Shown piece after piece: positions 1 through 60,046 of a DNA stretch of 64,000 nt (position 1 is the first letter of the stretch; each line of letters opens with the position of its first letter). The position numbers and the translations under genes are program-made. Location: sequence record OR805294.1, one strand, 5' to 3'. The notes below the pieces were generated by a model. The model saw only the letters and a list, made by a program, of their open reading frames with translations. It was not told the DNA's origin and ran no database searches.

Positions 1-422
1 ACATCGGCACCCTGCGCATCGTGCGCACCGCTAACAAAGAGGTCGGAAGTGTGCTCGACCTAAAAGTTAACGGGGTAGTAGTAGGGCAAGCTTTCCCGCT
101 CTACAGCACAAAAACCCAGCGTAGCTGGAACGCAAGCATGCACGCTACCGTTAACGGTGTAGAGGTGCAGTTTGCACAGGAAGGCGTGTTCAGTGCAATC
201 CGCATTGCACGGGCGTTCGAGGATGCAGTAAAGTATGCCGTTAGCAACGGCGAACAAGGGCAACCCCTCCCCGCCCCGGCGGCGGCAGAAGCGCAAGCAG
301 AAGCGCAAGCAGAAGCCCCGGCGGCGCAGTCCGACGAGGCGCCGGAGACCCCGGCAGCCGAAGCTAAGCCCGCCCGCAAAGGCGGCAGCAAAGGCGGCAG
401 CAAAGGCGGCAGCAAAAAGTAA
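1..422 (+). CDS. Early hypothetical protein, 5'-truncated at the window edge; paralogue of 6828..7265; Ala/Glu/Pro linker and (KGGS)3KK tail
   Basis: Frame is open from position 3 (IGTLRIVRT...). Shares TKTQRxW and GVFSAIRIARA with 6828..7265. GC-rich codons. 12-bp repeat AAAGGCGGCAGC x3 at 378-413. Confidence 0.85.
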   Translation, partial: IGTLRIVRTANKEVGSVLDLKVNGVVVGQAFPLYSTKTQRSWNASMHATVNGVEVQFAQEGVFSAIRIARAFEDAVKYAVSNGEQGQPLPAPAAAEAQAEAQAEAPAAQSDEAPETPAAEAKPARKGGSKGGSKGGSKK

Positions 423-435
423 GCGCTGCTAACAC

Positions 436-464
436 AGGAAAGGGGCAACTGCCCCTTTCCTTTT
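436..464 (+). terminator. Intrinsic terminator
   Basis: AGGAAAGGGGC-AACT-GCCCCTTTCCT followed by TTT, just after the stop codon. Confidence 0.85.
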
Positions 465-474
465 ATGTCCTAGT

Positions 475-501
475 TGTAAACGCAAATTAATCTTATTTGC
501 A
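475..501. promoter_or_regulatory. 27-bp Fur-box-like palindrome
   Basis: TGTAAACGCAAAT-T-AATCTTATTTGCA. Confidence 0.65.
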
Positions 502-522
502 TTTGCACAAGTCAATCTCCGG

Positions 523-550
523 TTGCATTACTGCGGTAAGATGTTAGTAT
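523..550 (+). promoter_or_regulatory. sigma70-type early promoter
   Basis: TTGCAT-16-TAGTAT with extended -10 TG; GGAG RBS and ATG577 follow. Confidence 0.7.
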
Positions 551-576
551 ATATGTAGCTATACGGAGTAATTGCT

Positions 577-807
577 ATGAAGCGCAAGTACCTAAAGGCA
601 CAGTTCGAGCATGTCAGTGCCGGGCGAGTTGCAAAAGAACTCGACGAGAAGTTCAATTTCGTTGTAGGCGATAATGTACACTACTGGGCCATCTTCGAAA
701 CTAATGTCAAACCCGAAGTTCTACAAAAGGCAATTCATGACATGAACGGTGGTGCTTACTGCCATGCATATTCTATTCCGTATGAGGATGTAGAGGAGTA
801 TCTCTAA
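577..807 (+). CDS. Small early hypothetical protein (76 aa)
   Basis: Promoter and GGAG RBS upstream. Confidence 0.8.
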   Translation: MKRKYLKAQFEHVSAGRVAKELDEKFNFVVGDNVHYWAIFETNVKPEVLQKAIHDMNGGAYCHAYSIPYEDVEEYL

Positions 808-1021
808 TGCTCTACTATCGCGATGTTTATGCAGGTGTTTGCTGTTAAACTTGTATAGCCGGCACCAGGTCGCATATAACACGCCTAGCCCCATGCAAAC
901 TGCGGACATGATCCATTCACGCCTGCAGCGTATGTTCGAAGAATTCGGTTGCAAGCCCGATGGTTGCTCTGCTAGCATGTACGAGGATAAGACGCACATC
1001 ACATTAGCCTGGAGCAAGTAA
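807..1021 (+). pseudogene. Small hypothetical gene, probably with a 1-nt frameshift (or sequencing error) near 837-840
   Basis: ATG807 is coupled to the upstream TAA and has an AGGAG RBS, but stops after 13 aa. One extra T in GTTTG would join it to the 839..1021 frame (71 aa). Confidence 0.45.
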
Positions 1022-1312
1022 ATGGATATGTCGATTGTGAACAAGCGCTTCGAGAAAGAACTAGCGCTGTTTAATGTCGAAGTTCTCGGTAAGCGCACAG
1101 TGAATCATATAACGAAACCGAACATCGAAGTTTCGTTCAAACTAAAGGGTCATACTACTGAAAAAGAGATGACCACTGTTACTCAGCTCGCACGTCCCAT
1201 TATGGAGTATGTAAGCGGACGTAGGGTGGTCTGGGCACATACCGGTCTTTGGCGCTCAATGAAAGACGACCTCGAAGTAGCAGTGCTGACAATGAAGTTA
1301 TCCAAACAATAA
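1022..1312 (+). CDS. Small early hypothetical protein (96 aa)
   Basis: GGAG RBS; terminator follows the stop. Confidence 0.8.
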   Translation: MDMSIVNKRFEKELALFNVEVLGKRTVNHITKPNIEVSFKLKGHTTEKEMTTVTQLARPIMEYVSGRRVVWAHTGLWRSMKDDLEVAVLTMKLSKQ

Positions 1313-1314
1313 GA

Positions 1315-1427
1315 GAAAGGGGCAACTGCCCCTTTCCTTTTATGTCCTAGTTGTAAATGCAAATTAATCTTATTTGCATTTGCACAAGTCAATCTCCTGT
1401 TGCATTACTGCGGTAAGATGTTAGTAT
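1315..1427 (+). repeat. 113-bp intergenic cassette, copy 2 (palindrome at 1352-1378, promoter TTGCAT...TAGTAT)
   Basis: 111/113 identical to 438..550. Confidence 0.95.
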
Positions 1428-1467
1428 GTGTTTAGCAGTAACACATAACTAGCAGGAGCAATAGACA

Positions 1468-1716
1468 ATGGCTAAAGTATTGCATGTTAACAGCATCGGC
1501 AACATCGCCGAAGTGTTTACATCTGTAGACCTCGACAGCGCCTTGTTGCACGCAATCAAGCGCTGTGCATTGATGGGCAAGGTTAAGGTTGTTGGTCCCA
1601 ACGCTCCCGTGTTTGCTAGCCATTACGACGCACTGAGAGCGTACGACGTGCAGTGGCGCCTAGTTCCTCCGGGCTGCGGCGTTACTTTGTACGTCATCGC
1701 CGAGGACAACAACTAA
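1468..1716 (+). CDS. Small early hypothetical protein (82 aa)
   Basis: CAGGAG RBS after the cassette promoter. Confidence 0.8.
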   Translation: MAKVLHVNSIGNIAEVFTSVDLDSALLHAIKRCALMGKVKVVGPNAPVFASHYDALRAYDVQWRLVPPGCGVTLYVIAEDNN

Positions 1717-1727
1717 GGAGAGACATA

Positions 1728-2030
1728 ATGAATCTCGTTCATCTGTGGATCAACGGGCGTGCTGTGACTGCCCGCAAGGTTGTCAGTAAACACACTGTCC
1801 GCAATCCGAACAGTCCGATCGATATCGAGACTATCGACGTTGTTCGACTGCGTCTGCCCCGTGGTGTTCGTGCTAGCAGTTGGACACTCCGTAAGGCAGT
1901 GTACCAGCTCATGGAGCAAAGCTGTAGCTGCTCGAGAGACTGTTGTGGACACTGGTTCGGCGGTGCACGCAAGATCTACATTAACGGCAGAGACATCAGT
2001 GTCGTTGCCGGGTACCAGCGCAATTACTAA
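1728..2030 (+). CDS. Small Cys-rich hypothetical protein (100 aa, CSCSRDCCGHWFG)
   Basis: TAAGGAG RBS places the start at 1728 rather than 1653. Confidence 0.8.
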   Translation: MNLVHLWINGRAVTARKVVSKHTVRNPNSPIDIETIDVVRLRLPRGVRASSWTLRKAVYQLMEQSCSCSRDCCGHWFGGARKIYINGRDISVVAGYQRNY

Positions 2031-2060
2031 AGGAAAAGGGGCAACTGCCCCTTTCCTTTT
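2031..2060 (+). terminator. Intrinsic terminator (same GGGGCAACTGCCCC family)
   Basis: AAAGGGGC-AACT-GCCCCTTTCCTTTT. Confidence 0.85.
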
Positions 2061-2071
2061 ATCCATTAATG

Positions 2072-2144
2072 TGTAAACGCGAATAATTCTTATTTGCACA
2101 GGTCATTGAGATGCGAATGCAAACAAGAGGCATTCTTGATACGG
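2072..2144. promoter_or_regulatory. Two Fur-box-like palindromes (2072-2098, 2118-2144)
   Basis: TGTAAACGCGAAT-A-ATTCTTATTTGCA and TGCAAACAAGAGG-C-ATTCTTGATACGG. Confidence 0.6.
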
Positions 2145-2179
2145 TCGGGTGATAAGAATTGTTCACAAAAAGAAAAAGC

Positions 2180-2207
2180 TTGCGTTATGCTACACAGGTG
2201 CTAGTAT
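2180..2207 (+). promoter_or_regulatory. sigma70-type early promoter
   Basis: TTGCGT-16-TAGTAT with TGn. Confidence 0.65.
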
Positions 2208-2249
2208 GTGTATTGCAGTATCTATAAACATTAATAGCAGGATAAGAAA

Positions 2250-2570
2250 ATGGTTGACTTTAAAGGTTTTAACTGGGACGCACTAGTCCCAGTGGACAAC
2301 GTTTCTACAGTTTCCATTAAAAATCACTACGAGGAACTCCTACAAAGTTTTGTTGACAACGGCATAGACTATGTGTTAGTCCGGCTGTCCCAGGAACTGC
2401 CGCACTACGAGGATTCAGATTATCCCTGCTACAAATTGGTTGACAAGTATGCAGGATGGATAGTAGGTTGGGACTACTACGGATTTGTTGTGGAACGCAT
2501 GGACACGCACCTTTTCTTTGACAACTGCACTGCAAAGGGTGTAATGGACTTCCTGGAAGCCAACGGCTAG
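2250..2570 (+). CDS. Small acidic hypothetical protein (106 aa)
   Basis: CAGGA RBS, promoter upstream, terminator downstream. Confidence 0.8.
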   Translation: MVDFKGFNWDALVPVDNVSTVSIKNHYEELLQSFVDNGIDYVLVRLSQELPHYEDSDYPCYKLVDKYAGWIVGWDYYGFVVERMDTHLFFDNCTAKGVMDFLEANG

Positions 2571-2574
2571 CACA

Positions 2575-2604
2575 AAAAGGAAGGGGCGCAAGCCCTTTTC
2601 TTTT
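2575..2604 (+). terminator. Intrinsic terminator
   Basis: GGAAGGGGC-GCAA-GCCCTTTTC followed by TTTT. Confidence 0.75.
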
Positions 2605-2618
2605 GTCTGCAATTTCTG

Positions 2619-2645
2619 TGCAAATAAGACGCATTCTTGATTAGG
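2619..2645. promoter_or_regulatory. Fur-box-like palindrome
   Basis: TGCAAATAAGACG-C-ATTCTTGATTAGG. Confidence 0.55.
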
Positions 2646-2764
2646 CCTGATAATAAGTTCTTATTAACAACAAAGAAACTGAATAAGAATAATTCTGAAA
2701 AAATAACCCTGCAGCGTAATAAAAAGGGTTTGCAAATTGCAAGCCCTTTTTAATATGCGTTTGT

Positions 2765-2824
2765 TAAGATTAATTCTTATTTGTAATGATAATATTCCCG
2801 CCTTACAAATAAGAATTAATCTTA
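2765..2824. repeat. Perfect 22-bp inverted repeat with 16-bp spacer, built from two motif half-sites
   Basis: TAAGATTAATTCTTATTTGTAA (2765-2786) / TTACAAATAAGAATTAATCTTA (2803-2824). Confidence 0.9.
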
Positions 2825-2913
2825 GAACAAATATTCACTTGATTTTTCTCCTAACATAGTGTATGTGTATGCTGGATAAGATTAAGTCTTGTTTGCTTGT
2901 TACATTTTATATG

Positions 2914-2942
2914 TTGCAATGCTAAGGCAATGACACTATTAT
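2914..2942 (+). promoter_or_regulatory. sigma70-type promoter
   Basis: TTGCAA-17-TATTAT. Confidence 0.65.
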
Positions 2943-2973
2943 ATGTACAGCAACACAAAACAGGAGATATAAC

Positions 2974-3279
2974 ATGTCAGCAGAATTGAAGCGGTTGTTA
3001 GAGATTTTTCCAACCTTTAAATCATTCATTTATGCTGAAGGGGCATATGGCATTGATGTTTGGAAGGCTACGGGTAGTGTTACTTTGGAACAGGTATTCA
3101 ATGCTGTTAATGCAGGCAATGCAGAATGGCAATGTAAAGGTGATCCAACATGCAGCCTGGAACAAAACAGCATGTATATTTTCATTACTATTCAGGAACC
3201 AGACTACACAGGAATGGTTGACATTGATGTTTGTGTAAAGATTACTAACGGTAATGAAGTAAGTTATCAAATAGCATAA
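2974..3279 (+). CDS. Small hypothetical protein (101 aa)
   Basis: CAGGAG RBS; terminator follows. Confidence 0.8.
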   Translation: MSAELKRLLEIFPTFKSFIYAEGAYGIDVWKATGSVTLEQVFNAVNAGNAEWQCKGDPTCSLEQNSMYIFITIQEPDYTGMVDIDVCVKITNGNEVSYQIA

Positions 3280-3280
3280 T

Positions 3281-3312
3281 AAAGGAAAGGGGATTAATTC
3301 CCCTTTCCTTTT
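3281..3312 (+). terminator. Intrinsic terminator
   Basis: AAAGGAAAGGGGA-TTAAT-TCCCCTTTCCTTT followed by T. Confidence 0.85.
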
Positions 3313-3326
3313 ATGTATAATATACT

Positions 3327-3379
3327 TATAAATAAGAATTAATTTTATTTAATTAAAATTAGAATAATTCTTATTTGCA
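3327..3379. promoter_or_regulatory. Two adjacent Fur-box-like palindromes
   Basis: TATAAATAAGAAT-T-AATTTTATTTAAT and TTAAAATTAGAAT-A-ATTCTTATTTGCA. Confidence 0.6.
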
Positions 3380-3497
3380 CGATCCCGCACTTATAACACA
3401 AGTATATTACAAAAGCAAGAATAAAATTAACTTGACACACATATATAGAATATAGCACAATGTGTTTATAAATTATATTACTACAGGAGCGTTAACC

Positions 3498-3869
3498 ATG
3501 TTCAAATGCAAATTGTTTGTAGTAGATCCTGTTTATAACAACCTTTGCTACACTCAACAAATATGGCTCGAAAGTGACGTAAATGTGTGTAGTCAAATAA
3601 AGCGTATTATTTCTAACGCAGAATTGGCATGCGCAAATAGGATAGTAAATAATCCTCATAGTCCACTATGCGTTAAATCGGCAGCATTAAAAATGGTTAT
3701 GGACGGGCGCATTGACATCGAACTCAAAGATGTCGATAGTTACGTCGATCAATATAAAGACATTCTCCCTAGCACAAATATTTTGGGTGTTTTTAAACCG
3801 ACGTTTTTATCTAACTGGAAAGAAGAGTGTGAACTTTATTTCCTTACTTGTGTTGAAAAAGACAATTAA
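3498..3869 (+). CDS. Hypothetical protein (123 aa)
   Basis: CAGGAG RBS places the start at 3498; TTGACA at 3432. Confidence 0.75.
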   Translation: MFKCKLFVVDPVYNNLCYTQQIWLESDVNVCSQIKRIISNAELACANRIVNNPHSPLCVKSAALKMVMDGRIDIELKDVDSYVDQYKDILPSTNILGVFKPTFLSNWKEECELYFLTCVEKDN

Positions 3870-3875
3870 TATAAT

Positions 3876-4163
3876 ATGGAAGATGATTTAAAAAATATTG
3901 TTTCGAAGACTATCTTATCTAATAAAATTAAGATAGTCTCTTTACGTACTGTAGTAAAAGCTCAGTATAAAAGAGTAGACTTCCATTATAAGATAGAATG
4001 TGAAAATAGTTCTGCAAAACGTAATTTGGCACTTGCCCGTATATGCAAACCATTAGAACACACATTAGGTTCAAAACTTGTTTATGTAGATATTGTGCCT
4101 ATCAAGTTTAAGAAAGATGAAATGCCATCTACTATTCTATCAGTAAGTGTAATGACCGATTGA
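3876..4163 (+). CDS. Hypothetical protein (95 aa), possible distant paralogue of 1022..1312
   Basis: ORF directly after the previous gene. Confidence 0.7.
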   Translation: MEDDLKNIVSKTILSNKIKIVSLRTVVKAQYKRVDFHYKIECENSSAKRNLALARICKPLEHTLGSKLVYVDIVPIKFKKDEMPSTILSVSVMTD

Positions 4164-4210
4164 TAATTGGATTTGATAATTGGATTTGATAATTGGATTT
4201 GATATTTGGA
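4161..4210. repeat. 13-bp tandem repeat TGATAATTGGATT x3 plus one degenerate copy
   Basis: Read directly; each unit contains GATAAT and the array abuts the palindrome at 4209-4235. Confidence 0.95.
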
Positions 4211-4235
4211 AATATAATAATAATTCTTATTTGCA
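4209..4235. promoter_or_regulatory. Fur-box-like palindrome
   Basis: GAAATATAATAAT-A-ATTCTTATTTGCA. Confidence 0.6.
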
Positions 4236-4281
4236 ATTATAATAAATTCTTGTTTACTTTTAAAATAAAAGCAAATTCTAG

Positions 4282-4310
4282 TTGCATAGCTAGCGGCAAT
4301 GTGCTAGTAT
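4282..4310 (+). promoter_or_regulatory. sigma70-type promoter
   Basis: TTGCAT-17-TAGTAT with TGn. Confidence 0.75.
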
Positions 4311-4339
4311 ATTAAAAAATAAAGACAGGAGTGTTATTC

Positions 4340-4522
4340 ATGCAAACCAAAGCAACCGAGTTGGCAGTAGGCGATGTTGTTTTCTACAATGGCATGAAAA
4401 TGACTATCCAGAAAATTTCTAAAGGTCGGTGTGCAATAGATATTACACTAGTAAATACTTTGGCTAAACTCACATCTTATGTGACAGTCGACTACGACGA
4501 AGAATTTGAAGAAGTATTATAA
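4340..4522 (+). CDS. Small hypothetical protein (60 aa), possibly SH3/KOW-like beta protein
   Basis: CAGGAG RBS gives ATG4340; ELAVGDVV motif. Confidence 0.75.
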   Translation: MQTKATELAVGDVVFYNGMKMTIQKISKGRCAIDITLVNTLAKLTSYVTVDYDEEFEEVL

Positions 4523-4539
4523 TGCAGAAATTATAGTCA

Positions 4540-4568
4540 TAAGAAAAGGGGCAATGCCCCTTTTCTTA
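4540..4568. terminator. Bidirectional terminator
   Basis: TAAGAAAAGGGGC-AAT-GCCCCTTTTCTTA between convergent genes. Confidence 0.85.
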
Positions 4569-4805
4569 TAGTCCCAACAAATGCTTGCCACTTTTGACTT
4601 GCATCATACGTACTTTCTTTTTGCGCATTTGCGTTCTTACGTTCAGGCTGTTGGGACCTTTGAAGCTATACAGTATTTCAGTAGTCCCGTCTTCATAGTT
4701 GCGTACCACATTTGCAACAATTTGACTGCCTTCCTGGAACGCTTCGATAAACACGCAGTAATTGAAATTTTCCTTGTTAGCGTTATGTGCGCGTAGTTGC
4801 ATCAT
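4566..4805 (-). CDS. Small hypothetical protein (79 aa)
   Basis: Minus-strand CAGGAG RBS, promoter at 4844-4871, ends in the bidirectional terminator. Confidence 0.75.
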   Translation of the reverse strand: MMQLRAHNANKENFNYCVFIEAFQEGSQIVANVVRNYEDGTTEILYSFKGPNSLNVRTQMRKKKVRMMQVKSGKHLLGL

Positions 4806-4843
4806 TTTCTGTTACTCCTGCGTTGTTTTGCTTTGTTATGTGT

Positions 4844-4871
4844 AGTATACGCTATGTGTGTACTAATGCAA
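4844..4871 (-). promoter_or_regulatory. sigma70-type promoter
   Basis: TTGCAT-16-TATACT on the minus strand. Confidence 0.65.
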
Positions 4872-4949
4872 GAATTTTCTTCCATTTTCTTTCAAATAAA
4901 ATGTTATTAGCATCTATTCTGTTATAACATTTTCTATGACTTCGTGTTT

Positions 4950-4976
4950 TGCAAATAAGAATTAATCGCATTTGCA
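4950..4976. promoter_or_regulatory. Fur-box-like palindrome
   Basis: TGCAAATAAGAAT-T-AATCGCATTTGCA. Confidence 0.65.
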
Positions 4977-5158
4977 TTCCTACCTATCTGCCTAAAATTT
5001 AGGCAGCCTGGGTGATTGTCTCCCCCGCCCTATTACTGGTCTCTGTATAAAGATAATAGCATATTTGCATCTGCATGCAAGCATTTTTTGTAGAATTTTC
5101 CTCTTGACATTCCTTGCTGTAGGCTACATTATGCACACACAAAGCAGGAGATACCATT

Positions 5159-5539
5159 ATGGCACTCATAGCATTAGTCGCAACTGCATATGACAAAGAA
5201 GGCGATAAGTTCGACTATGTTCGATATCTTAAAGCTCATATCAATTTTGTGTCTGCTCAAGATCAACTGAAAGAATGGATCAAAAACAAAATTGATGCAA
5301 GTATAGCAGAAGTTAAAATCGGATTACGTGCAGAAATCGAAGTATTGGCCTATTTGGGAAACTATATAAGCCATAGTCACCGGATTATTAGTCCCGCCGG
5401 AATCATTATGTACATTGTTCTTGATGAGAAGTATGTTAACGAACTTCACGGTCAAATTTCTAATGCAATTGATTGTGAAGAAAAGAAACATGTAATAAAG
5501 AAAGAAGAAAACGTCACTTATATTGATTTTAAAAAATAA
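5159..5539 (+). CDS. Hypothetical protein (126 aa)
   Basis: TTGACA-17-CATTAT promoter from 5104; CAGGAG RBS. Confidence 0.8.
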   Translation: MALIALVATAYDKEGDKFDYVRYLKAHINFVSAQDQLKEWIKNKIDASIAEVKIGLRAEIEVLAYLGNYISHSHRIISPAGIIMYIVLDEKYVNELHGQISNAIDCEEKKHVIKKEENVTYIDFKK

Positions 5540-5540
5540 C

Positions 5541-5569
5541 TTGCATTAGCTGTAACGTATATGTATTAT
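5541..5569 (+). promoter_or_regulatory. sigma70-type promoter for a candidate sRNA
   Basis: TTGCAT-17-TATTAT. Confidence 0.65.
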
Positions 5570-5574
5570 GTACT

Positions 5575-5733
5575 CAAGTTTGCAGCAAGACGTATTAATT
5601 TGTTTTGCTGTTAGTTGTAACTCCTGCTACCAAGTATGTGTCGAGCTAATGCTCCTGACTTGGTCTTTGGTACACTGGTTTGGGTGTACCGTTCTTGAGC
5701 TGCAAAGGGCTTGCCCGGAGCAGCTTTTTTTTT
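5575..5733 (+). ncRNA. Candidate ~155-nt structured small RNA
   Basis: Promoter upstream, several hairpins, GC-rich 3' stem plus T9 tract, no RBS-led ORF. Confidence 0.55.
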
Positions 5734-5813
5734 GACCAATATTATTCATTTGACAAAAAATAATAATTAAAAATATAATAGCTTATTATATAACTTCTCA
5801 TATTAGGTTAATT

Positions 5814-6185
5814 ATGAAACTTATTATTGCTTCAATTGCATTGTCTTTGTCCACACTAGTTTCTGCAGAATCTATTTCTGAAGTTAAGATAACTAAAGAA
5901 ACATGCCTTACACTTCTGGAATTATCTAAGATTCATGTTGATATGGTAGTAAATGAACATATGAATGCAATACAAATTGCATCTCATATGGATATTGTAT
6001 CTAATTTATATAAGAATAATAATAGTAAATGGCTTGCATTCTTGCAGGCTCAAGCAAATATTTCAAAATTAATTGATGACGTATATGAGTTTTCATCTAC
6101 TGAAGAAAGAAAGATTATTCCTCTAGCCATATTTAACGGTTGTATGGAAAGAGTTGGTAATACTTTTGAAATATATAAGAAATAA
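5814..6185 (+). CDS. Putative exported protein with signal peptide (123 aa)
   Basis: MKLIIASIALSLSTLVSA-E signal pattern; TTGACA-18-TATAAT at 5750-5779. Confidence 0.75.
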   Translation: MKLIIASIALSLSTLVSAESISEVKITKETCLTLLELSKIHVDMVVNEHMNAIQIASHMDIVSNLYKNNNSKWLAFLQAQANISKLIDDVYEFSSTEERKIIPLAIFNGCMERVGNTFEIYKK

Positions 6186-6186
6186 T

Positions 6187-6495
6187 ATGTATAATGTATA
6201 TGTAGTCCACGGAATAATCAACACAGGTGTTGAGACTAATATATGTGATATAGAACGTTACGTTGCAAGTAACGACTTCTATGCTGTAGCAAAGTTTCTT
6301 AATTTTAAAGAACATATGGTACCAAACACACGATTAATTGTTTCTGGATTAAATACTAAAAAGAACATATTAGAATTGGAATTAAATTTATCGAAAAAAG
6401 AATATGTAGTATCAGGTTTTAGAGTTACATCACCTGATATAAACAAATGTATTGAATATTACCTGTGTAGAAGGATATTTAAGTTACATGATTGA
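6187..6495 (+). CDS. Hypothetical protein (102 aa)
   Basis: ATG just after the upstream stop. Confidence 0.65.
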   Translation: MYNVYVVHGIINTGVETNICDIERYVASNDFYAVAKFLNFKEHMVPNTRLIVSGLNTKKNILELELNLSKKEYVVSGFRVTSPDINKCIEYYLCRRIFKLHD

Positions 6496-6634
6496 ATTTA
6501 TATTAAAATCCCTTTTATTAACTTCAATTGTCAGTGTTGGCATACTACTGATATTCATTATTATTTCATTGTTAATGTTTGGCTTAGCACCGATAGTTCC
6601 ATTCCTTATTTAATTTTAATTATTTGCAAGCAAA

Positions 6635-6661
6635 TGCAAATGCGAATAATTCTTATTATCC
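6635..6661. promoter_or_regulatory. Fur-box-like palindrome
   Basis: TGCAAATGCGAAT-A-ATTCTTATTATCC. Confidence 0.6.
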
Positions 6662-6827
6662 AGCAGGCCACTGTACCTAATCTTCGTTAGATAAAATCTA
6701 TTAGAATCTACAAAGTCCATTAAAACGTTCAATTGTACATGGTGGCCAGATCTGCATATACTACACACATGAAGCAAGCAAACAGCGCTTCATAAACAAA
6801 CCCAAATACAGCTAGGAGTTCCAAATC

Positions 6828-7265
6828 ATGACCAAAGCAACCGTTACCGTCGAGCAATCCGCAATCAAACTGGTCCGCCGCAACCTGGAAGGGCACCGGC
6901 AGGCCCTGCTGCTGAACGGCGTCGAAGTAGGCAGCAGCGAAGCGTTCTACAAGACCAAAACCCAGCGCACCTGGTCGGCGAAGATCGACGCCAACATCAA
7001 CGGCAAGGACATCGTCCTCGAACAGAAAGGCGTGTTCAGCGCGATCCGGATCGCCCGGGCGATGGAACAAGCAATCCTGTTCATCCTGACCGACGGCAAA
7101 GAAGGCGCCGAGATGCCGGCCAGCACGCTGAGCAAGGAAGAGCAAGCCCACAACCTGGTCAAGGCAGTAGTCCAGGTCGCCGACCACGCAGTCCAGTCCG
7201 GCGACGCTGCCCCGGCGAAGAAAGGCAGCTCGAAGAAGCGCAAAGAAGCCCAGCCGGAAGCATAA
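6828..7265 (+). CDS. Early hypothetical protein (145 aa), paralogue of 1..422, basic C-tail
   Basis: TAGGAG RBS, GC-rich host-like codons, shared motifs, GAAA-loop terminator downstream. Confidence 0.9.
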   Translation: MTKATVTVEQSAIKLVRRNLEGHRQALLLNGVEVGSSEAFYKTKTQRTWSAKIDANINGKDIVLEQKGVFSAIRIARAMEQAILFILTDGKEGAEMPASTLSKEEQAHNLVKAVVQVADHAVQSGDAAPAKKGSSKKRKEAQPEA

Positions 7266-7278
7266 TCCGGACTACACC

Positions 7279-7304
7279 GAGAAAGCACCGAAAGGTGCTT
7301 TCTC
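7279..7304 (+). terminator. Intrinsic terminator
   Basis: GAGAAAGCACC-GAAA-GGTGCTTTCTC. Confidence 0.85.
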
Positions 7305-7310
7305 TATGAC

Positions 7311-7370
7311 TGTTAATAACAAATATTCTTATTTGCATCTATTCTGACATAATAATAACTCTTATTTACA
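7311..7370. promoter_or_regulatory. Two Fur-box-like palindromes (7311-7337, 7344-7370)
   Basis: TGTTAATAACAAA-T-ATTCTTATTTGCA and CTGACATAATAAT-A-ACTCTTATTTACA. Confidence 0.55.
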
Positions 7371-7421
7371 AATCATACTGAATAGTGTATTTTACACACT
7401 AAACATTGTAGGTAATATAAA

Positions 7422-7910
7422 TTGAATATATTTGTGACTGACACAAATCCTTATGTATGTGCCAAACATCATTGTGATGTTCATCTAAGAAAGATGATAG
7501 TAGAAACAGCACAATTGTTAAGCACCACTCATTATATAATAAACGGATATACTCCTGCATATAAACCTACTCATAAAAATCATCCATGTGCCGTTTGGAT
7601 TAGAGAAAGTTCAAAAAACTATGAATGGACTTATGAACTTCTTACAAATCTTATAAATGAATTTGAATATAGATTTGACAAACAACATGCAACTAAAATT
7701 CACCTTTCGTCATTAAAAACTATACCAAAACTCCCTAATATAGAAAGAACAGAGTTTGTCTTAGTTATGCCAGACGAATTTAAAACAGGTAATGTAACAC
7801 ATTCATATCAGTTATATTTAAATGACAAATTTAAAGAATGGGCATCGAGATCTAACAGACCCATTTATGCTACATATACAAAGACACCTAAACCATATTT
7901 TATTAGTTGA
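7422..7910 (+). CDS. Pyrimidine-dimer DNA glycosylase-family protein (endonuclease V-related)
   Basis: MNIF...HCDxHxxKMIVETAQLLST and YKPTHKNHPCAVW motifs; TTG start. Confidence 0.8.
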   Translation: MNIFVTDTNPYVCAKHHCDVHLRKMIVETAQLLSTTHYIINGYTPAYKPTHKNHPCAVWIRESSKNYEWTYELLTNLINEFEYRFDKQHATKIHLSSLKTIPKLPNIERTEFVLVMPDEFKTGNVTHSYQLYLNDKFKEWASRSNRPIYATYTKTPKPYFIS

Positions 7911-7982
7911 AATATAATAAAAATGATTGACATGTACATAAGATCATATTATGCTGTATAAAACAGCAAGGAGTAGATATAC

Positions 7983-8216
7983 ATGTACCGCAAACTGAAT
8001 ACAAATCCACGCCCAATGCCAAAAACAAAGGCAATTCCAACTAAATTTGTCATTCAGTACACTGCACGGAATAAAGCAACAGAAAGTTTGTTCAAAAAAA
8101 GAACTATTACATTACATGCGTTTGGGCGTCTCGATGCACAAACACTCCTATCAAAACATATCCGAAAAAATAATTTGGAATTAGGTGTAATTATTGATTT
8201 CGGTGAAACAGTTTAG
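7983..8216 (+). CDS. Small basic hypothetical protein (77 aa)
   Basis: TTGACA-17-TATGCT at 7927-7955; AAGGAG RBS. Confidence 0.8.
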   Translation: MYRKLNTNPRPMPKTKAIPTKFVIQYTARNKATESLFKKRTITLHAFGRLDAQTLLSKHIRKNNLELGVIIDFGETV

Positions 8217-8227
8217 TTAGTGACATA

Positions 8228-8254
8228 GGGAAAGGGGCAGTTGCCCCCTTTCCC
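8228..8254 (+). terminator. Intrinsic terminator (inverted copy of the GGGGCAACTGCCCC hairpin)
   Basis: GGGAAAGGGGC-AGTT-GCCCCCTTTCCC. Confidence 0.75.
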
Positions 8255-8274
8255 ATTATTAAGTCAATTGCAAA

Positions 8275-8301
8275 TGCAAATACAAATTATTCTTATTTGC
8301 A
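8275..8301. promoter_or_regulatory. Fur-box-like palindrome
   Basis: TGCAAATACAAAT-T-ATTCTTATTTGCA. Confidence 0.65.
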
Positions 8302-8483
8302 CAGATCAGACCATCCATTCCAATAACATTACTAACTTGGATGAAATGGCTTACTACAATGAACTTTGAATACTAAAAAGTACCTAAGAAGTAATTCCAG
8401 TTGTATCTAAAACACTATGTGTTATTATACATATAGTGTTTTTATTTCTTATAACTATATTCAATAATAATGGTAAAACATAT

Positions 8484-8807
8484 ATGATTGAAGTAATTAA
8501 ATGCATTATATGTAATGAATCACCCCGTCCTTGTGCATTTGCAGCATTTATTACTCAAATGCGTCAAGTAGTAAAACCTCATGCAACTATAACTAGTTGG
8601 AATATTCTGCCCGGCATTAATGATGATCCAACTAGTTATATTCATGCATTCAGTATAAAATCAAAAACAGCATACGATATTAATCAAGCGGTTACCTTAT
8701 TACTAATGTCATTATATAATGCTAGTGAATATAAGACTAGCTACATACCTACTTCGTTTAAAGACTATGAATCTACAATAAAGCATTTATCTAAGATCAA
8801 ACAATAA
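8484..8807 (+). CDS. Hypothetical protein (107 aa)
   Basis: ORF with ATG8484; promoter-like TTGTAT-16-TATTAT at 8401. Confidence 0.6.
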   Translation: MIEVIKCIICNESPRPCAFAAFITQMRQVVKPHATITSWNILPGINDDPTSYIHAFSIKSKTAYDINQAVTLLLMSLYNASEYKTSYIPTSFKDYESTIKHLSKIKQ

Positions 8808-8871
8808 CCAGTTGCATATTTACAAATATACATGTATGCTAATATGTATACACAATCATGAGTACATTATC

Positions 8872-9027
8872 ATGACAAAAGAAATTGCTTTTACTGAAGG
8901 ATTAAAAGCAGGCACTCAAATAAAAGAAGGCAAAGCTATCCTAACTGACTTCTTTCGATATTTCAATTCCTTACCAACTAATATGAGAACTTCTTTTATT
9001 ATCGGTATCAAAACCGGTAGAAACTAA
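8872..9027 (+). CDS. Small hypothetical protein (51 aa)
   Basis: TTGCAT-17-TATGCT at 8812-8840 overlaps the track's start, so ATG8872 is more likely. Confidence 0.55.
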   Translation: MTKEIAFTEGLKAGTQIKEGKAILTDFFRYFNSLPTNMRTSFIIGIKTGRN

Positions 9028-9114
9028 TAAGCATATTAATTTTCATATTTTGGTAGACAAAGGTACTCACTGGATGCATACTGTATACATACAGAACATA
9101 CGGAGTACAAAGGG

Positions 9115-9384
9115 ATGGATGCGCGTAGCCTGCTTCGCCTGATAGAAGACCTTCCTATAGCTGTCTTCGGCAGCACAATGGATATTGTTCATCGAGTCAA
9201 TTTTGAAGCTCTGGACAATGCCGCCCACACCGACGGGGTAAAAGTCCACGAAGACGGAACCAACCGTTATACAGACGCTTTTGTCGATTGTTGGCTCCGC
9301 AGCGTCGAAACAGTTTTGGCCTGTTGCGATTTTGTGACCGAAGACGCAGCGAAGTGGTATATCGAGCACGGTGTCAAGTTTTGA
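9115..9384 (+). CDS. Small acidic hypothetical protein (89 aa)
   Basis: GGAG RBS; GC-rich. Confidence 0.75.
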   Translation: MDARSLLRLIEDLPIAVFGSTMDIVHRVNFEALDNAAHTDGVKVHEDGTNRYTDAFVDCWLRSVETVLACCDFVTEDAAKWYIEHGVKF

Positions 9385-9414
9385 CATCCTCTGCCGCGCC
9401 TGCAGATAAAAAGG

Positions 9415-9457
9415 TTGACGTAGACTAGCAATAGACACATAATAATTACAACGCAAC
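9415..9457 (+). promoter_or_regulatory. sigma70 promoter, twin of 10816..10858
   Basis: TTGACG-17-CATAAT followed by AATTACAACGCAAC. Confidence 0.8.
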
Positions 9458-9482
9458 GCAACTAGCCCTGGAGGGCAAAACT

Positions 9483-9632
9483 ATGTGTAACATTCAATGC
9501 ATGAACAGCAAAGCCGGCGAGTCCTACGCATGGATTTGGAGCGATAGCGATAGCGATATCTGCTACGAAGTTATCTTCCGGCATGGCCAAGTCCTCACCC
9601 AGGTTTGGCTCGGCTATGATATTGTAGCCTAA
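9483..9632 (+). CDS. Small protein (49 aa, MCNIQCMNSKAGESYAWIW...), not in the ORF track
   Basis: GGAGG RBS after the promoter; hairpin AAAGCCCCG/CGGGGCTTT at 9641-9665 downstream. Confidence 0.65.
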   Translation: MCNIQCMNSKAGESYAWIWSDSDSDICYEVIFRHGQVLTQVWLGYDIVA

Positions 9633-9681
9633 CACCAACTAAAGCCCCGTCCCAGGCGGGGCTTTACCGAAGGAAAAGATC

Positions 9682-9891
9682 ATGATCGAACAACTGAAAG
9701 ACATGCTCGTAGCGCAACGCATGCGCATGAACCAACTCGAAAAACTGCGCTACACCGGACGCGTCGCTAGCGAGTTGCATGCCCACGCCAGGGAATTGTG
9801 TGAAGCCTTGGAACTGGCAATTGCAAATGCCCAGTGCCTGGAAATGCGCAAGTTCGAAGAAGCCGCCCTGCACGCCCTGTTCGCACAATAG
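9682..9891 (+). CDS. Small helical hypothetical protein (69 aa)
   Basis: AAGGA RBS; GC-rich codons. Confidence 0.75.
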   Translation: MIEQLKDMLVAQRMRMNQLEKLRYTGRVASELHAHARELCEALELAIANAQCLEMRKFEEAALHALFAQ

Positions 9892-9924
9892 CCCATCGCG
9901 CACAACCCGACAAGGAAACCAAAC

Positions 9925-10416
9925 ATGAGCACCACAATCCCTGATTCGATTAACCCGGGTGATCTTCCTGAAATCGGCCAGCCATTGGCCGATGGAACCT
10001 TCTTTGCCCGCCAATGGCTCAATGGCAAAGAATACGCCTACGTCGATCTCGGCAAAAGCGCCGAGTTCACTGGAGAATGGGGCGAGTATGGGCTGGACGT
10101 GGCCAGCGCCGTTAGCTATCGAGACGGAGCTTCGAACACGGTCGCCATGGCTGAAGCTGGCAGCCCGATTGCCAAGCAAGCTCTTGAGATCGGAGAAGGC
10201 GTATTCATTCCCTCTGTTCTGGAACTGGCTCTTCTGTTCTCCGCCAAGCAAGCCGGCGAGCTGTCTGGTTTCGCAGATCGCTGGTATTGGTCGAGTTCGC
10301 AATACTCCGCCTACGGCGCCTTCAACACGCACCTCGGCGACGGCGACACAGGCCTCGACCCCAAGTACGTCGACTTCCGTGTCCGCCCCGTCCACAAGAT
10401 TCTCATTCTTCAGTAA
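9925..10416 (+). CDS. DUF1566 (Lcl/CLec-like) domain protein of Pseudomonas prophage type
   Basis: C-terminal WYWSSSQYSAYGAF...DG...FRVRPVH motif; AAGGA RBS. Confidence 0.75.
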   Translation: MSTTIPDSINPGDLPEIGQPLADGTFFARQWLNGKEYAYVDLGKSAEFTGEWGEYGLDVASAVSYRDGASNTVAMAEAGSPIAKQALEIGEGVFIPSVLELALLFSAKQAGELSGFADRWYWSSSQYSAYGAFNTHLGDGDTGLDPKYVDFRVRPVHKILILQ

Positions 10417-10493
10417 TCTAGCCCCGGAGATAACACAATGAACCTGCACCTCTCCAAGCATTGTCTGCGCCCGCGCGCGACTAAGGAACAGTC

Positions 10494-10742
10494 ATGAGCA
10501 TTGCAAGCTACTTCTTGTTGTCCACTATTGTCTTCAACAACAACACCTACGCTCGTTCGACGACAGTGGACACCATTGTTGTTCGTGACCTCAGCAAGGA
10601 AGACTGCGAGGCGCTCAAGCGTGAGCGCGAAGCAGTTGTTAAGAACATCCGGGCAAGGAACTTCGGTAGCTCTGGTGATACGAGCGGTATCGCCGTGGGC
10701 TTTTCCAAACATAGCTGCACAAAGATGGAGGGTACGAAATGA
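10494..10742 (+). CDS. Small hypothetical protein (82 aa)
   Basis: TAAGGA RBS. Confidence 0.7.
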   Translation: MSIASYFLLSTIVFNNNTYARSTTVDTIVVRDLSKEDCEALKREREAVVKNIRARNFGSSGDTSGIAVGFSKHSCTKMEGTK

Positions 10743-10815
10743 CTCAACTGGCCACGGCGAGCAAACATTGCCCGGAAGGTGCTAGCTGAACGCCTGGCGG
10801 AACAATAAATAAAAG

Positions 10816-10858
10816 TTGACGTGGCCAAGCGAAGGGCGCATAATAATTACAACGCAAC
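10816..10858 (+). promoter_or_regulatory. sigma70 promoter, twin of 9415..9457
   Basis: TTGACG-17-CATAAT followed by AATTACAACGCAAC. Confidence 0.8.
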
Positions 10859-10882
10859 ACAGCAAGCCCCGGAGGCGCAACC

Positions 10883-11083
10883 ATGACCCAGATCGTAGAT
10901 GTCAAGCAAATTGCAATTGATGCAAACCGTCGCCCTGCCTACAATGCGGTCATGGTGCGCTGGTTGATGCAGGAAGCTGAATTGCACCGTAGCTGCGGTC
11001 GCACCGCTACCCTGTTCTGCATCGTTCGCAACCGCCCTGACGGCACACAGCGCCAGCTTGTGCAGCTTGTGGCTAGCGAGTAA
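10883..11083 (+). CDS. Small hypothetical protein (66 aa)
   Basis: GGAGG RBS after the promoter. Confidence 0.8.
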   Translation: MTQIVDVKQIAIDANRRPAYNAVMVRWLMQEAELHRSCGRTATLFCIVRNRPDGTQRQLVQLVASE

Positions 11084-11113
11084 CTTCTACAACCCTACGC
11101 CCAGGAGGCCGTC

Positions 11114-11278
11114 ATGAATGCTGCACTGGCTAGACTTCAAAACGAACGTTGCATGTTACTTCGCCGGATGCTTTGCAGCAAATGGCACGGATTCTGTTTT
11201 GCAGGTCACCCCTGGGCAGAACAAGCCCGTAGTCTGCACAACGAATCCAAGTGCATCCGCGAACATTACAGTAAGTAA
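11114..11278 (+). CDS. Small Cys/His-containing protein (54 aa, MNAALARLQNERCMLL...), not in the ORF track
   Basis: CAGGAGG RBS; the track's 11118 frame is a shadow. Confidence 0.7.
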   Translation: MNAALARLQNERCMLLRRMLCSKWHGFCFAGHPWAEQARSLHNESKCIREHYSK

Positions 11279-11312
11279 TCCAATCCCACCGGATCTTACT
11301 GAGGATAAGATA

Positions 11313-11417
11313 ATGACATACGCAGAACTAATAAAGAAACTACATAACATAGAAGCTGGTCATTATCTTTCCAATAATGAAGTTAAGTTTCAAAACACAG
11401 GCAAGCAGGAGAACTAA
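11313..11417 (+). CDS. Small protein (34 aa, MTYAELIKKLHNIEAGHY...)
   Basis: GAGGA RBS. Confidence 0.5.
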   Translation: MTYAELIKKLHNIEAGHYLSNNEVKFQNTGKQEN

Positions 11418-11418
11418 A

Positions 11419-11715
11419 ATGAATTGCGAACATTTTTTCCTCAGTGCAGTAAAAGAACTTCTGTCCCTGTACCACATTAAGAGTACTATTCAACCGTCTT
11501 CTGATAACCTCGAAGAATTGGTAGTAGTTATTACCGATACTGCTTTCGGTACTATCAGATATGTCGGAAATAATACTGGATCAGTTATGTGTTATACTAT
11601 GGGCGGTAATTACCCGTTGTATGATACTGAGTGTTATTCCAACCGAACTATGATAGATTGTGTTATGTTGATATCAGTTTGGTATTCAATGTTTCCGGCA
11701 TTTGATAATAAGTAA
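11419..11715 (+). CDS. Hypothetical protein (98 aa)
   Basis: CAGGAG RBS gives ATG11419. Confidence 0.75.
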   Translation: MNCEHFFLSAVKELLSLYHIKSTIQPSSDNLEELVVVITDTAFGTIRYVGNNTGSVMCYTMGGNYPLYDTECYSNRTMIDCVMLISVWYSMFPAFDNK

Positions 11716-11723
11716 TATAATGG

Positions 11724-11769
11724 TTGTTCTATATAGTGTATGATGTTAGTTGTATATTATATAGAACAA
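11724..11769. repeat. 12-bp inverted repeat
   Basis: TTGTTCTATATA (11724-11735) / TATATAGAACAA (11758-11769). Confidence 0.85.
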
Positions 11770-11971
11770 TTCTATTAACTGGGAGGGATTAATAAAAATA
11801 TTTTCTTGACAATAGTAGGTATAGGATAATTCTATTATACTGAAAATTGTTATAGAAAAATATAGTTGACAAATTTTGAAAGTGATGAATTCCAACACCG
11901 GGTGGCTGTAAGCTGAGACGGTTGACATTTGGTGAGTGGTGGATTGTTACGCGGGTAGATTTTGAAATTCA

Positions 11972-12029
11972 CCGTATATAGGTTCACTTATGTCACTTAT
12001 GAGTCATTTCCGTATATAGGTTCACTTAT
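11972..12029. repeat. 20-bp direct repeat CCGTATATAGGTTCACTTAT x2
   Basis: Copies at 11972-11991 and 12010-12029. Confidence 0.95.
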
Positions 12030-48723: not shown

Positions 48724-49690
48724 CATAATAAAACTAAAGGACGTATGTAACAAAACAGACGTTCTCCTAAGTGTTTTAAAGTTTTTGCTTAGGAAGACCC
48801 AGTTGTATGTTTAAAGGGTGAACGGTAACGGGCATTCTTGTTTAAGACTAGTTCTTATGAAGACATTGGCAACTAACATAGCAGCTTTGTTCCATCATTG
48901 GATATTGGTAGTAGAAACTATCCCCATCGTGCCTTTACTGTAGTACCGTTAGAGACGGAGATGACGCAGGAAAAAAGGTTATTTAAATTATGATTTTGGG
49001 TGCTGCAGAACACTTTCGTAAACAAAAGGAATATAGTTTACGTATACACAACGGGAACGGGAAAAAGCTTTTTAAGCAAAAACGAGTCCCTGGTAATTGG
49101 TGTTTAACGGGAGTGACGTCCCAAATGTTATTCATCGATTAACACTGTAAGAAGGTTGTAAGGGTTATTGTGTTCGAAGTGGTTTACACAACTGTTCTTC
49201 CTACATTTATGTACAGAAGTGTAAACGAAAGGATGTTGCTCTGGTAGAAAAAGATCAACGTACTTTATGACACTATCCTTGTGACATATGTACTTGTACC
49301 AACAACAGCCGCAGGTTACGGATATGGTATTACAAACTGTACTGCGGTTCCGGGAGTTGAAAGTGGATGTTAGCTTAGGTGGCTGTTTGCTTAATTATAA
49401 TGTTTAATTTAGGCAATATAAGCGTCGGGTGAGGCTTTCGTAGGTTGCGTGTTTATGCTACGGTGTAAATGGGCTAGACTACTGGCGCATACATGAGTAT
49501 TGTAGGATTGGCGCTTTAATAAAGAAATTTGTTAAAGTTTGAGTTTAGCTCCCCGCTCATTAGCAATAAACGTTGCTAGTCGATAGTATACCCACGCCTA
49601 AATAATGCCGTCATTGTTTAGTTTTTTTAAAAAATATAATTGTCAATTATATGTCGTACGCATCTACCCCGAAAAGGGGTAGATGTTTAT
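48724..49690 (+). ncRNA. Candidate large (~950-nt) structured non-coding RNA
   Basis: Perfect promoter, no ORF of 60 aa or more, raised GC, many local and long-range helices, 10-bp terminal hairpin at 49661-49685. Confidence 0.6.
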
Positions 49691-49692
49691 GA
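49661..49692 (+). terminator. Terminator-like hairpin
   Basis: CATCTACCCC-GAAAA-GGGGTAGATG followed by TTTATGA. Confidence 0.65.
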
Positions 49693-49747
49693 CTTTCGTT
49701 TACACTCATGTCATAATCAGTACACGCCATTTTAGGCCATTCTACAT

Positions 49748-49918
49748 CAATACACTGCTTCTAGCAGTGTATTGGACATACAAAATGATCTTAAATTATA
49801 TCAAATTTGTTTAATTACTTTAATTTTGTTACTTTAGTAATTTGTATTTTGTTTATATGAGTTGTAGTTTACGAAAACGAATATAAACAAAATACATATG
49901 TGAACTGTAGTTCACATA
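49748..49918. repeat. Cluster of perfect inverted repeats
   Basis: 11 bp (49748-58/49764-74), 16 bp (49843-58/49881-96), 9 bp (49897-905/49910-918). Confidence 0.9.
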
Positions 49919-50070
49919 CTTACTAACGTTGTATATTACGGTAATTCTATAAAATATCTCTATATAATTATAAACGTTTTATGGCATACTACGACTGAAC
50001 GAAATTGAAAATTAACTAGAGATTTAATTAGATAAATAATATTGTAAAAATTGTATAGAGGTATACATCA

Positions 50071-59928: not shown

Positions 59929-59963
59929 TAATAACAAGTTATACTTGTTATTCGAAGAATACC

Positions 59964-59997
59964 AAAAAAAGTGTAGTAGAAATACTACACTTTTTTA
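59964..59997 (+). terminator. Intrinsic terminator
   Basis: GTGTAGTA-GAAA-TACTACAC followed by T6. Confidence 0.9.
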
Positions 59998-60026
59998 TTG
60001 ACTAGAAAAAAATAATTTGTTAGTAT
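59998..60026 (+). promoter_or_regulatory. sigma70-type promoter
   Basis: TTGACT-17-TAGTAT with TGn. Confidence 0.7.
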
Positions 60027-60046
60027 TATAAAAAACTATTTTATAT

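Follow-up and report, generated by a model that had tools for sequence, protein, structure and literature searches.

A candidate small RNA outside any described family in the early region of PA5oct-like jumbo phages

Pseudomonas phage Ettore (OR805294.1) is a PA5oct-like jumbo phage. Within the 64,000-nucleotide stretch of its genome that we analysed (hereafter the window), the best-supported interpretation of the element at 5541-5733 is that it encodes a small RNA outside any described family, at a locus that had not been annotated as RNA before. The existence of a discrete non-coding RNA at this position appears likely to us. For the element as a whole, the explanation that we tentatively prefer, at slightly less than even chances, is an abundant, terminator-bounded small RNA, perhaps pairing through a linker that displays CUCCUG. 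Taken by itself, the proposal that the RNA acts by anti-Shine-Dalgarno pairing seems to us rather unlikely. The original prediction of a phage small RNA is upheld by the terminator, by G-U pairs that are specific to the + strand, by the GC island, by purifying selection, by substitutions of a non-coding type and by a spike in RNA-seq depth.

Results

The element lies between two early genes of the terminal repeat

The 1.1 kb round the element showed 100% identity to Ettore positions 191100-192200 (Ettore position = 186000 + window position) and 97-98% identity to ten other PA5oct-like records (genus Wroclawvirus). The counterpart in PA5oct, 32,667-32,940 of MK797984, is devoid of any CDS, the element itself being found at about 32703-32860. 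It belongs to the early part of the 39-kb terminal repeat (DTR), the home of the early genes. Early transcription of PA5oct uses the Watson strand almost exclusively (PMC7318152), and the phage needs the host RNA polymerase, its promoters being of the type TTGAC/TATAATA (Lood et al. 2020, PMC7318152). The features of the locus are as follows (window coordinates).

5104-5132, + strand: promoter of the upstream gene, sigma-70-type TTGACA-17-CATTAT, 10/12 matches in the promoter scan
5145-5150, + strand: CAGGAG Shine-Dalgarno of ETTORE_0395 (ATG at 5159), in the context AGCAGGAGaUAC
5159-5539, + strand: ETTORE_0395, upstream early gene, 126 aa, an ORFan confined to the genus
5541-5569, + strand: candidate weak promoter, TTGCAT (5541-5546), 17-nt spacer, TATTAT (5564-5569), 8/12 matches
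5568-5735, + strand: ORF ETTORE_0396, 55 aa, cysteine-rich hydrophobic product, probably a spurious gene call
5576-5733, + strand: predicted small RNA of about 150-158 nt, 5' end inferred, 3' end given by the terminator
5582-5611, + strand: predicted hairpin 1, 5583-5591 with 5602-5610, extended in the MFE fold to 11 bp, 5582-5592 with 5601-5611
5612-5628, + strand: predicted single-stranded linker UAGUUGUAACUCCUGCU, 17 nt, with CUCCUG motif 1 (5621-5626)
5629-5664, + strand: predicted hairpin 2, ACCAAGT 5629-5635 with ACTTGGT 5658-5664
5669-5690, + strand: predicted hairpin 3, GGTACAC 5669-5675 with GTGTACC 5684-5690
5697-5733, + strand: predicted intrinsic terminator, outer stem of 7 bp, 5697-5703 with 5720-5726, T9 at 5725-5733, -15.1 kcal/mol
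5750-5779, + strand: promoter of ETTORE_0397, perfect consensus TTGACA-18-TATAAT in the promoter scan
5814-6185, + strand: ETTORE_0397, downstream gene

Every sequence feature that had been listed in the original prediction was found at its place. The promoter proposed there would start transcription at about 5576-5577. It fell below the threshold of our promoter scan, which did not list it, and matches of its quality occur about 8 times per kb on the + strand, no better than chance. Because ETTORE_0397 has its own consensus promoter at 5750-5779, the element is not the leader of this gene. Since there is no terminator between the promoter at 5104 and position 5733, the ETTORE_0395 mRNA must at the least carry the element within its 3'UTR.

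Both flanking genes are ORFans of the genus. No distant homologues of their proteins were found in IMG/VR or in JGI metagenomes, and a search of a 5.8-billion-protein database with a flanking protein returned only clusters at 100% and 98%. Similarly, blastn of the element against phages (E up to 5) gave no distant relative and blastn against plasmids gave only AT-rich chance matches; searches with exact 18- to 22-mers of the element likewise yielded no distant relative in viral, metagenome and genome collections, and the reference collections contained it in no other genetic context. The exact 161-nt element of Ettore (all sampled 31-mers) was present in public metagenome runs (X25-X38) from biofilm, groundwater, marine, gut, sludge, soil, landfill and wastewater sources.

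RNA-seq contigs are enriched in the element

Expression was assessed by placing the Logan contigs of four PA5oct RNA-seq runs (X1-X4) on positions 3400-8300 of the window. The depth in the bin that covers most of the element (5532-5695) amounted to 21106, 2908 and 5843 in X1, X2 and X3, respectively, as compared with 319, 223 and 485 in the preceding bin, these values being summed, binned and unstranded contig word depths, a poor measure of expression that does not map ends. The depth was therefore 12- to 66-fold above that of the upstream gene in these three runs, the rise falling between bins 5368-5531 and 5532-5695. In X4 a single long contig covered the region and gave no local information. 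The contigs of three runs broke at 5623-5668, as expected of very high coverage.

A further, independent hint came from runs of three separate studies (X8, X12 and X14), the RNA type of which is a guess. They contained 0.92, 0.77 and 0.69 of the sampled words of the element, but only 0.13, 0.09 and 0.08 of those across the 1.1-kb stretch, which indicates that their contigs hold essentially the element alone. The simplest reading of these unstranded contig data is a discrete and apparently very abundant transcript. The RNA-seq study of PA5oct annotated, on the basis of these data, four ncRNAs, two of them in the DTR and none at the locus of the element (PMC7318152). When the element was compared with ncRNA001 and ncRNA002, the window and the DTR of PA5oct, no paralogue was detected by blastn or nhmmer.

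Two other depth spikes are found nearby, in bins 4384-4547 and 7008-7171. The first, at 4384-4570, reached 5617-9374 in 4/4 runs over a 60-aa gene (4340-4522) and stops at a 15-bp hairpin (4538-4570) listed by the scan as a terminator of the minus strand. The second lies within a GC-rich island (6828-7265) for which PA5oct annotates a + strand ORF of 145 aa and Ettore two - strand ORFs, with no Pfam family. Similar islands (53-61% GC in 300-nt windows, for a genome at 34.5%) are found at 1-600 and 9000-11400.

The + strand is predicted to fold into three hairpins and a terminator

The + strand of 5573-5733 had a predicted folding energy of -57 kcal/mol (z = -4.0), a value that was not reached in any of 200 dinucleotide shuffles. 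Hairpin 1 contains 3 G-U pairs among its 11 bp and closes with an 8-nt AU loop. Hairpin 2 is bipartite, with an outer stem of 7 bp and an inner one of 1+4 bp, and hairpin 3, invariant in 10/10 phages, closes a 6-nt loop with 8 bp (GGUACACU with GGUGUACC). The terminator is built of the outer stem, an internal loop, GGG/CCC, a CUUG loop and U9 (U8 in nine relatives). Its arms GCAGC/GCUGC are shared with hairpin 1, and TTTGCAGC (5579-5586) is complementary to GCTGCAAA (5699-5706), an 8-bp alternative pairing that is roughly expected by chance within 160 nt.

The - strand folded more weakly (-46.4 kcal/mol) than the + strand because five of the pairs are G-U, which is possible on the + strand only. 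We rejected a minus-strand RNA: its fold is weaker, it has no terminator and no start codon follows either CAGGAG.

With 44.7% GC, the element also forms an island as compared with 34.5% in the window and 28-34% in the flanking genes. In a sliding-window scan (mean z = -0.83, sd 1.5 over the window), its fold ranked among the top few per cent. Several other spots of the window fold far more strongly, so that structure alone is not exceptional for the element. The strongest fold of the window (2693-2852, z = -13) belongs to a region (2012-3380, corresponding to PA5oct 29,139-30,120, which is unannotated) where palindromic repeats of the type CAAATAAGAATTAATTCTTATTTG form a family, comprising a perfect 22-nt inverted repeat (2765-2786 with 2803-2824) and copies at 2078, 2682, 2877, 3325 and 3359; the region is perhaps an operator array or a further ncRNA locus. 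Structured 160-nt windows with z = -7 to -10 were also found at 7253-7412, 49653-49972, 3173-3412 and 59893-60052.

The element varies little and its predicted pairs are intact

Among the relatives, the element showed 5 variable sites in 149 nt, as compared with 32/251 third codon positions that vary in the two genes beside it (Fisher P = 0.0012); it is thus about four-fold less variable than the synonymous sites of these genes. In the flanking intergenic DNA 33/442 sites were variable (P = 0.08 as compared with the element). Four of the five changes in the element affect unpaired positions and the fifth, G5592A in hairpin 1 of phage Deifobo, replaces a G-U pair by A-U. The probability that all five would be non-disruptive by chance is 0.06. 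The 41 predicted pairs were intact in all 5 distinct sequences, 40 of them never varying and one shifting from G-U to A-U.

One CUCCUG motif is exposed and its complement is frequent at early ribosome-binding sites

CTCCTG occurs at 5621 and 5652 and is the sole repeated hexamer of the element besides the T-run. The probability of finding at least two copies in dinucleotide shuffles was 2.5e-4. CTCCTG and its complement are over-represented in the whole window (30 observed for 11.3 expected) because CAGGAG serves as a ribosome-binding site. The remark in the original prediction that neighbouring genes use CAGGAG as their ribosome-binding site is correct, and the pattern is sharper than had been stated: 8 nearby genes of the window use it, and about a fifth of the early genes round the element have a CAGGAG site. 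Of the 17 CAGGAG sites that precede a start codon in the complete PA5oct genome, 11 are found in the DTR at 15-39 kb. We compared the letter that precedes AGGAG in NAGGAG-ATG ribosome-binding sites. At PA5oct (MK797984) 15,000-39,000, which corresponds to about 1-12,000 of the window, this was C in 11 cases, A in 5 and T in 1, as compared with C in 2, A in 11, T in 10 and G in 3 in the rest of the genome (Fisher P = 1.1e-4 for the preference for C in the early DTR). Some of the 5'UTRs with CAGGAG are duplicated cassettes (for example ...aaaacaacgCAGGAG, which occurs twice), so that these sites may share ancestry rather than being independent. The 16S 3' end reads …CCUCCUUA, and a C before AGGAG adds no pairing with it but pairs with the G of CUCCUG.

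The two copies differ in their predicted accessibility. Motif 1 (5621-5626) is exposed, with a mean unpaired probability of 0.79 and an opening energy of 0.8 kcal/mol, as compared with 6.6 kcal/mol for motif 2 (5652-5657), which is buried and mostly paired within hairpin 2. The Shine-Dalgarno context of ETTORE_0395 (AGCAGGAGaUAC) matches motif 1 over 8+3 nt, with a duplex energy of -17.1 kcal/mol. When both motif contexts were hybridized in silico with 13 CAGGAG initiation regions, the mean duplex energy showed no significant gain over flank-shuffled seeds (motif 1, P = 0.11; motif 2, P = 0.29). Complementary matches of at least 11 nt across the phage genome occurred at chance frequency and revealed no long target. 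The original view, in which two anti-Shine-Dalgarno motifs would act as a repressor, is favoured by the exposed motif 1 and by the enrichment of CAGGAG in the early region; the buried motif 2, the insignificant flank complementarity and the absence of a long target match in the phage genome speak against it.

Two individual matches were judged to be due to chance. One is a 22/26 antisense match at 52759-52784 of the window (E = 0.018), in a CDS of the late region, which involves the paired interior of hairpin 2. The other is a stretch of 12 nt at PA5oct 260669 that is perfectly complementary to the region of motif 2 and is itself part of a terminator hairpin (CAGGAGC-ATTAG-GCTCCTG, MK797984 260,665-260,700) between convergent genes.

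A cis-acting module is the main rival explanation

The main rival to the small RNA reading is a purely cis-acting 3'UTR/terminator module of ETTORE_0395, ahead of an RNA that binds protein, a gene for a small protein and an attenuator, in falling order of probability. In such a module, which would stop transcription before the next promoter and shield the 3' end of the mRNA, the abundant fragment would be a stable decay remnant without a role in trans, and CUCCUG would be incidental. Several observations fit this explanation: the ETTORE_0395 mRNA must include the element, as no terminator precedes 5733, the internal promoter is weak, many other intergenic spots of the early region are strongly structured, and complementarity to targets is insignificant past 6 nt. 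However, three hairpins before a competent terminator exceed what termination needs, the constraint extends over the whole 149 nt, single-stranded linkers included, the two copies of CTCCTG are hardly expected by chance (2.5e-4), and the depth exceeds that of the gene body by 12- to 66-fold. We find a purely cis-acting module somewhat unlikely, also in the termination and protection role just described.

No known RNA family or protein-binding array is recognizable

The original prediction drew an analogy with Fur-controlled RNAs such as PrrF and RyhB, which finds no support, there being neither a Fur box nor an Rfam match. The best match to the Fur-box sequence GATAATGATAATCATTATC near the promoter scored 12/19, a value equalled or bettered at 224 positions of the window. 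The covariance models of Rfam 15 gave no match at gathering score in the whole window, and at E up to 10 the interval 5300-6000 yielded only three chance matches to eukaryotic or archaeal snoRNAs (E 1.9-8.7). The c4 model (RF01695), PrrF, RyhB, 6S, Rsm, Crc and riboswitch families did not match the element, and no tRNA or tmRNA was found. A sponge for RsmA or Crc was rejected, the element being devoid of arrays of GGA or A-rich motifs.

An RNA that binds a protein or the ribosome instead of pairing with mRNAs, for instance as a sponge of Hfq, as a decoy or together with translation factors encoded by the phage (S21, for example), is distinctly unlikely in our view. It would agree with the high abundance and the several conserved hairpins, with a U-rich 3' end as is typical of Hfq ligands, with the lack of a convincing extended mRNA target and with the fact that PA5oct encodes S21 and an IF-2-like protein. 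Against it speak a single GGA and the absence of A-rich ARN repeats, hence of any known motif array, the lack of any Rfam match, 6S, Rsm and Crc included, and the absence of a direct link to S21. The S21 homologue and the 'IF-2-like' protein of PA5oct, both translation-initiation factors, are encoded at MK797984 170,955-171,161 and 241,368-241,670 and might be tied to the unusual Shine-Dalgarno usage of the phage.

The 55-aa ORF is probably a spurious call

The element overlaps ETTORE_0396, annotated as a gene for a small cysteine-rich hydrophobic protein. The frame 5568-5735 is unbroken, automatic annotation has picked it up in five phages (Ettore, Cassandra, Paride, PAC2 and Deifobo), and small hydrophobic early proteins are common in phages. 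Yet its ATG at 5568 lies within the -10 hexamer, as had been indicated in the original prediction, thus upstream of the predicted transcript start. No Shine-Dalgarno precedes it. The ORF is absent from the RNA-seq-curated annotation of PA5oct and from four other genomes, and the length of its product varies among relatives (55, 56 or 64 aa) because the T-run is T8 or T9. In the ten phages, the variable sites within the ORF fall at codon positions 1, 3, 2, 3 and 2 (2/50 third positions being variable), unlike those of ETTORE_0395, of which 13/14 are third codon positions. The product belongs to no Pfam or PHROG family, and a search for the exact protein found Ettore as sole source. Judging from these sequence comparisons, ETTORE_0396 is probably a spurious call, and we consider it very improbable that the element is a coding gene.

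Least probable of all, to the point of being nearly negligible, is a conditional terminator (an attenuator or riboswitch-like element) in which UUUGCAGC (5579-5586) would pair with GCUGCAAA (5699-5706) and allow downstream read-through: the 8-nt complementarity and the GCAGC/GCUGC arms common to hairpin 1 and the terminator are present, but ETTORE_0397 has its own perfect consensus promoter past the terminator, the alternative helix is missing from the MFE and centroid folds, no riboswitch family matches, and the switch suggested in the original prediction thus comes down to an 8-bp match near chance level.

Discussion

Proposed mode of action

In the small RNA reading that we prefer, PA5oct-like (Wroclawvirus) phages would produce a + strand RNA of about 150-158 nt that ends at the terminator 5697-5733. 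Two origins are conceivable for its 5' end, namely initiation at the weak sigma-70-like promoter (5541-5569) and processing of the 3'UTR of the ETTORE_0395 mRNA. The RNA would fold into three hairpins and the terminator, leaving the 17-nt linker to display CUCCUG, which may pair by a short seed with Shine-Dalgarno regions. Foremost among the candidate targets would be the CAGGAG sites of nearby early genes, the translation of which would be lowered by pairing once the RNA has accumulated; host mRNAs are perhaps targeted too. In PA5oct, the genes with CAGGAG include gp52, 62, 69, 78, 87, 90, 93, 94, 95 and 105. A limit of this mechanism is that a lone 6-nt seed is short for specific regulation.

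T4 RegB is an endoribonuclease that silences a set of early genes via the GGAG of their Shine-Dalgarno sequences. By functional analogy only, RegB being a protein nuclease and the element a proposed pairing RNA, one could imagine an RNA counterpart of RegB in which the exposed CUCCUG would read CAGGAG as a private variant of the Shine-Dalgarno sequence and collectively shut the early DTR regulon, a proposal that we regard as improbable. The corollary that the spelling of the ribosome-binding site would encode a temporal programme of translation is speculative to the same degree.

Comparison with other RNAs

The closest parallels are ncRNA001 and ncRNA002 of PA5oct, which belong to the same phage lineage and, like the element, are in the early DTR, are abundant on the + strand, have no plausible ORF and show no similarity outside the genus (PMC7318152). 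The element shares no sequence similarity with them, is shorter and has the predicted architecture of a clearly terminator-bounded small RNA. ncRNA001 (MK797984 8263-8498, locus L011) starts with ...AUACCUCCUAUG, comprising an anti-Shine-Dalgarno-like ACCUCCU, and its last letters are GAGGAG, some 25 nt ahead of the gp37 start (8503). From its sequence, it could, instead of being a free lncRNA, be a 5' leader, the 5' end of which masks the Shine-Dalgarno that follows.

The c4 antisense RNA of P1/P7 pairs through two short motifs with a target region spanning a ribosome-binding site and is co-transcribed with its neighbours. The element resembles c4 (RF01695) in being a predicted phage small RNA with two short motifs directed at ribosome-binding sites. 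c4 is a feature of temperate phages, where its specific a'/b' motifs are directed at a single downstream operon, whereas the element would have one exposed motif and many dispersed candidates among the early genes.

Among the small RNAs of enterobacteria and pseudomonads, CpxQ, DapZ and MicL are 3'UTR-derived or Hfq-dependent, and PrrF and RyhB act at the ribosome-binding sites of their targets. RNAs of the CpxQ/DapZ/MicL type and the element have in common a terminator shared with the upstream mRNA, hairpins, a single-stranded seed, a 3' stem followed by a U-tail and, presumably, an action at the ribosome-binding sites of targets. The element shows no homology to CpxQ, DapZ, MicL, PrrF or RyhB, it has no Fur box, and its predicted seed would be the generic anti-Shine-Dalgarno core and not one specific to a gene.

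RNAIII and the Rsa family of S. aureus block initiation on sets of mRNAs through C/U-rich motifs in UCCC loops. As in the element, several copies of a motif complementary to the Shine-Dalgarno sequence are present. These RNAs belong to another phylum and are not homologous to the element, and their motifs are in hairpin loops, whereas the element has one copy in the linker and one in a stem.

Meaning for the phage

RNA-based regulation is almost unexplored in virulent phages, especially in the jumbo phages. PA5oct has been proposed as a model phage and as a candidate for therapy, and its published transcriptome contains four ncRNAs, among which the element does not figure. Five relatives carry the locus in their annotation as a hypothetical protein. 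If the RNA is real, the annotations need correction and the early region of PA5oct has a third highly expressed ncRNA. If the link with CAGGAG is true as well, the phage would time its early genes by means of a small RNA and a private variant of the ribosome-binding site.
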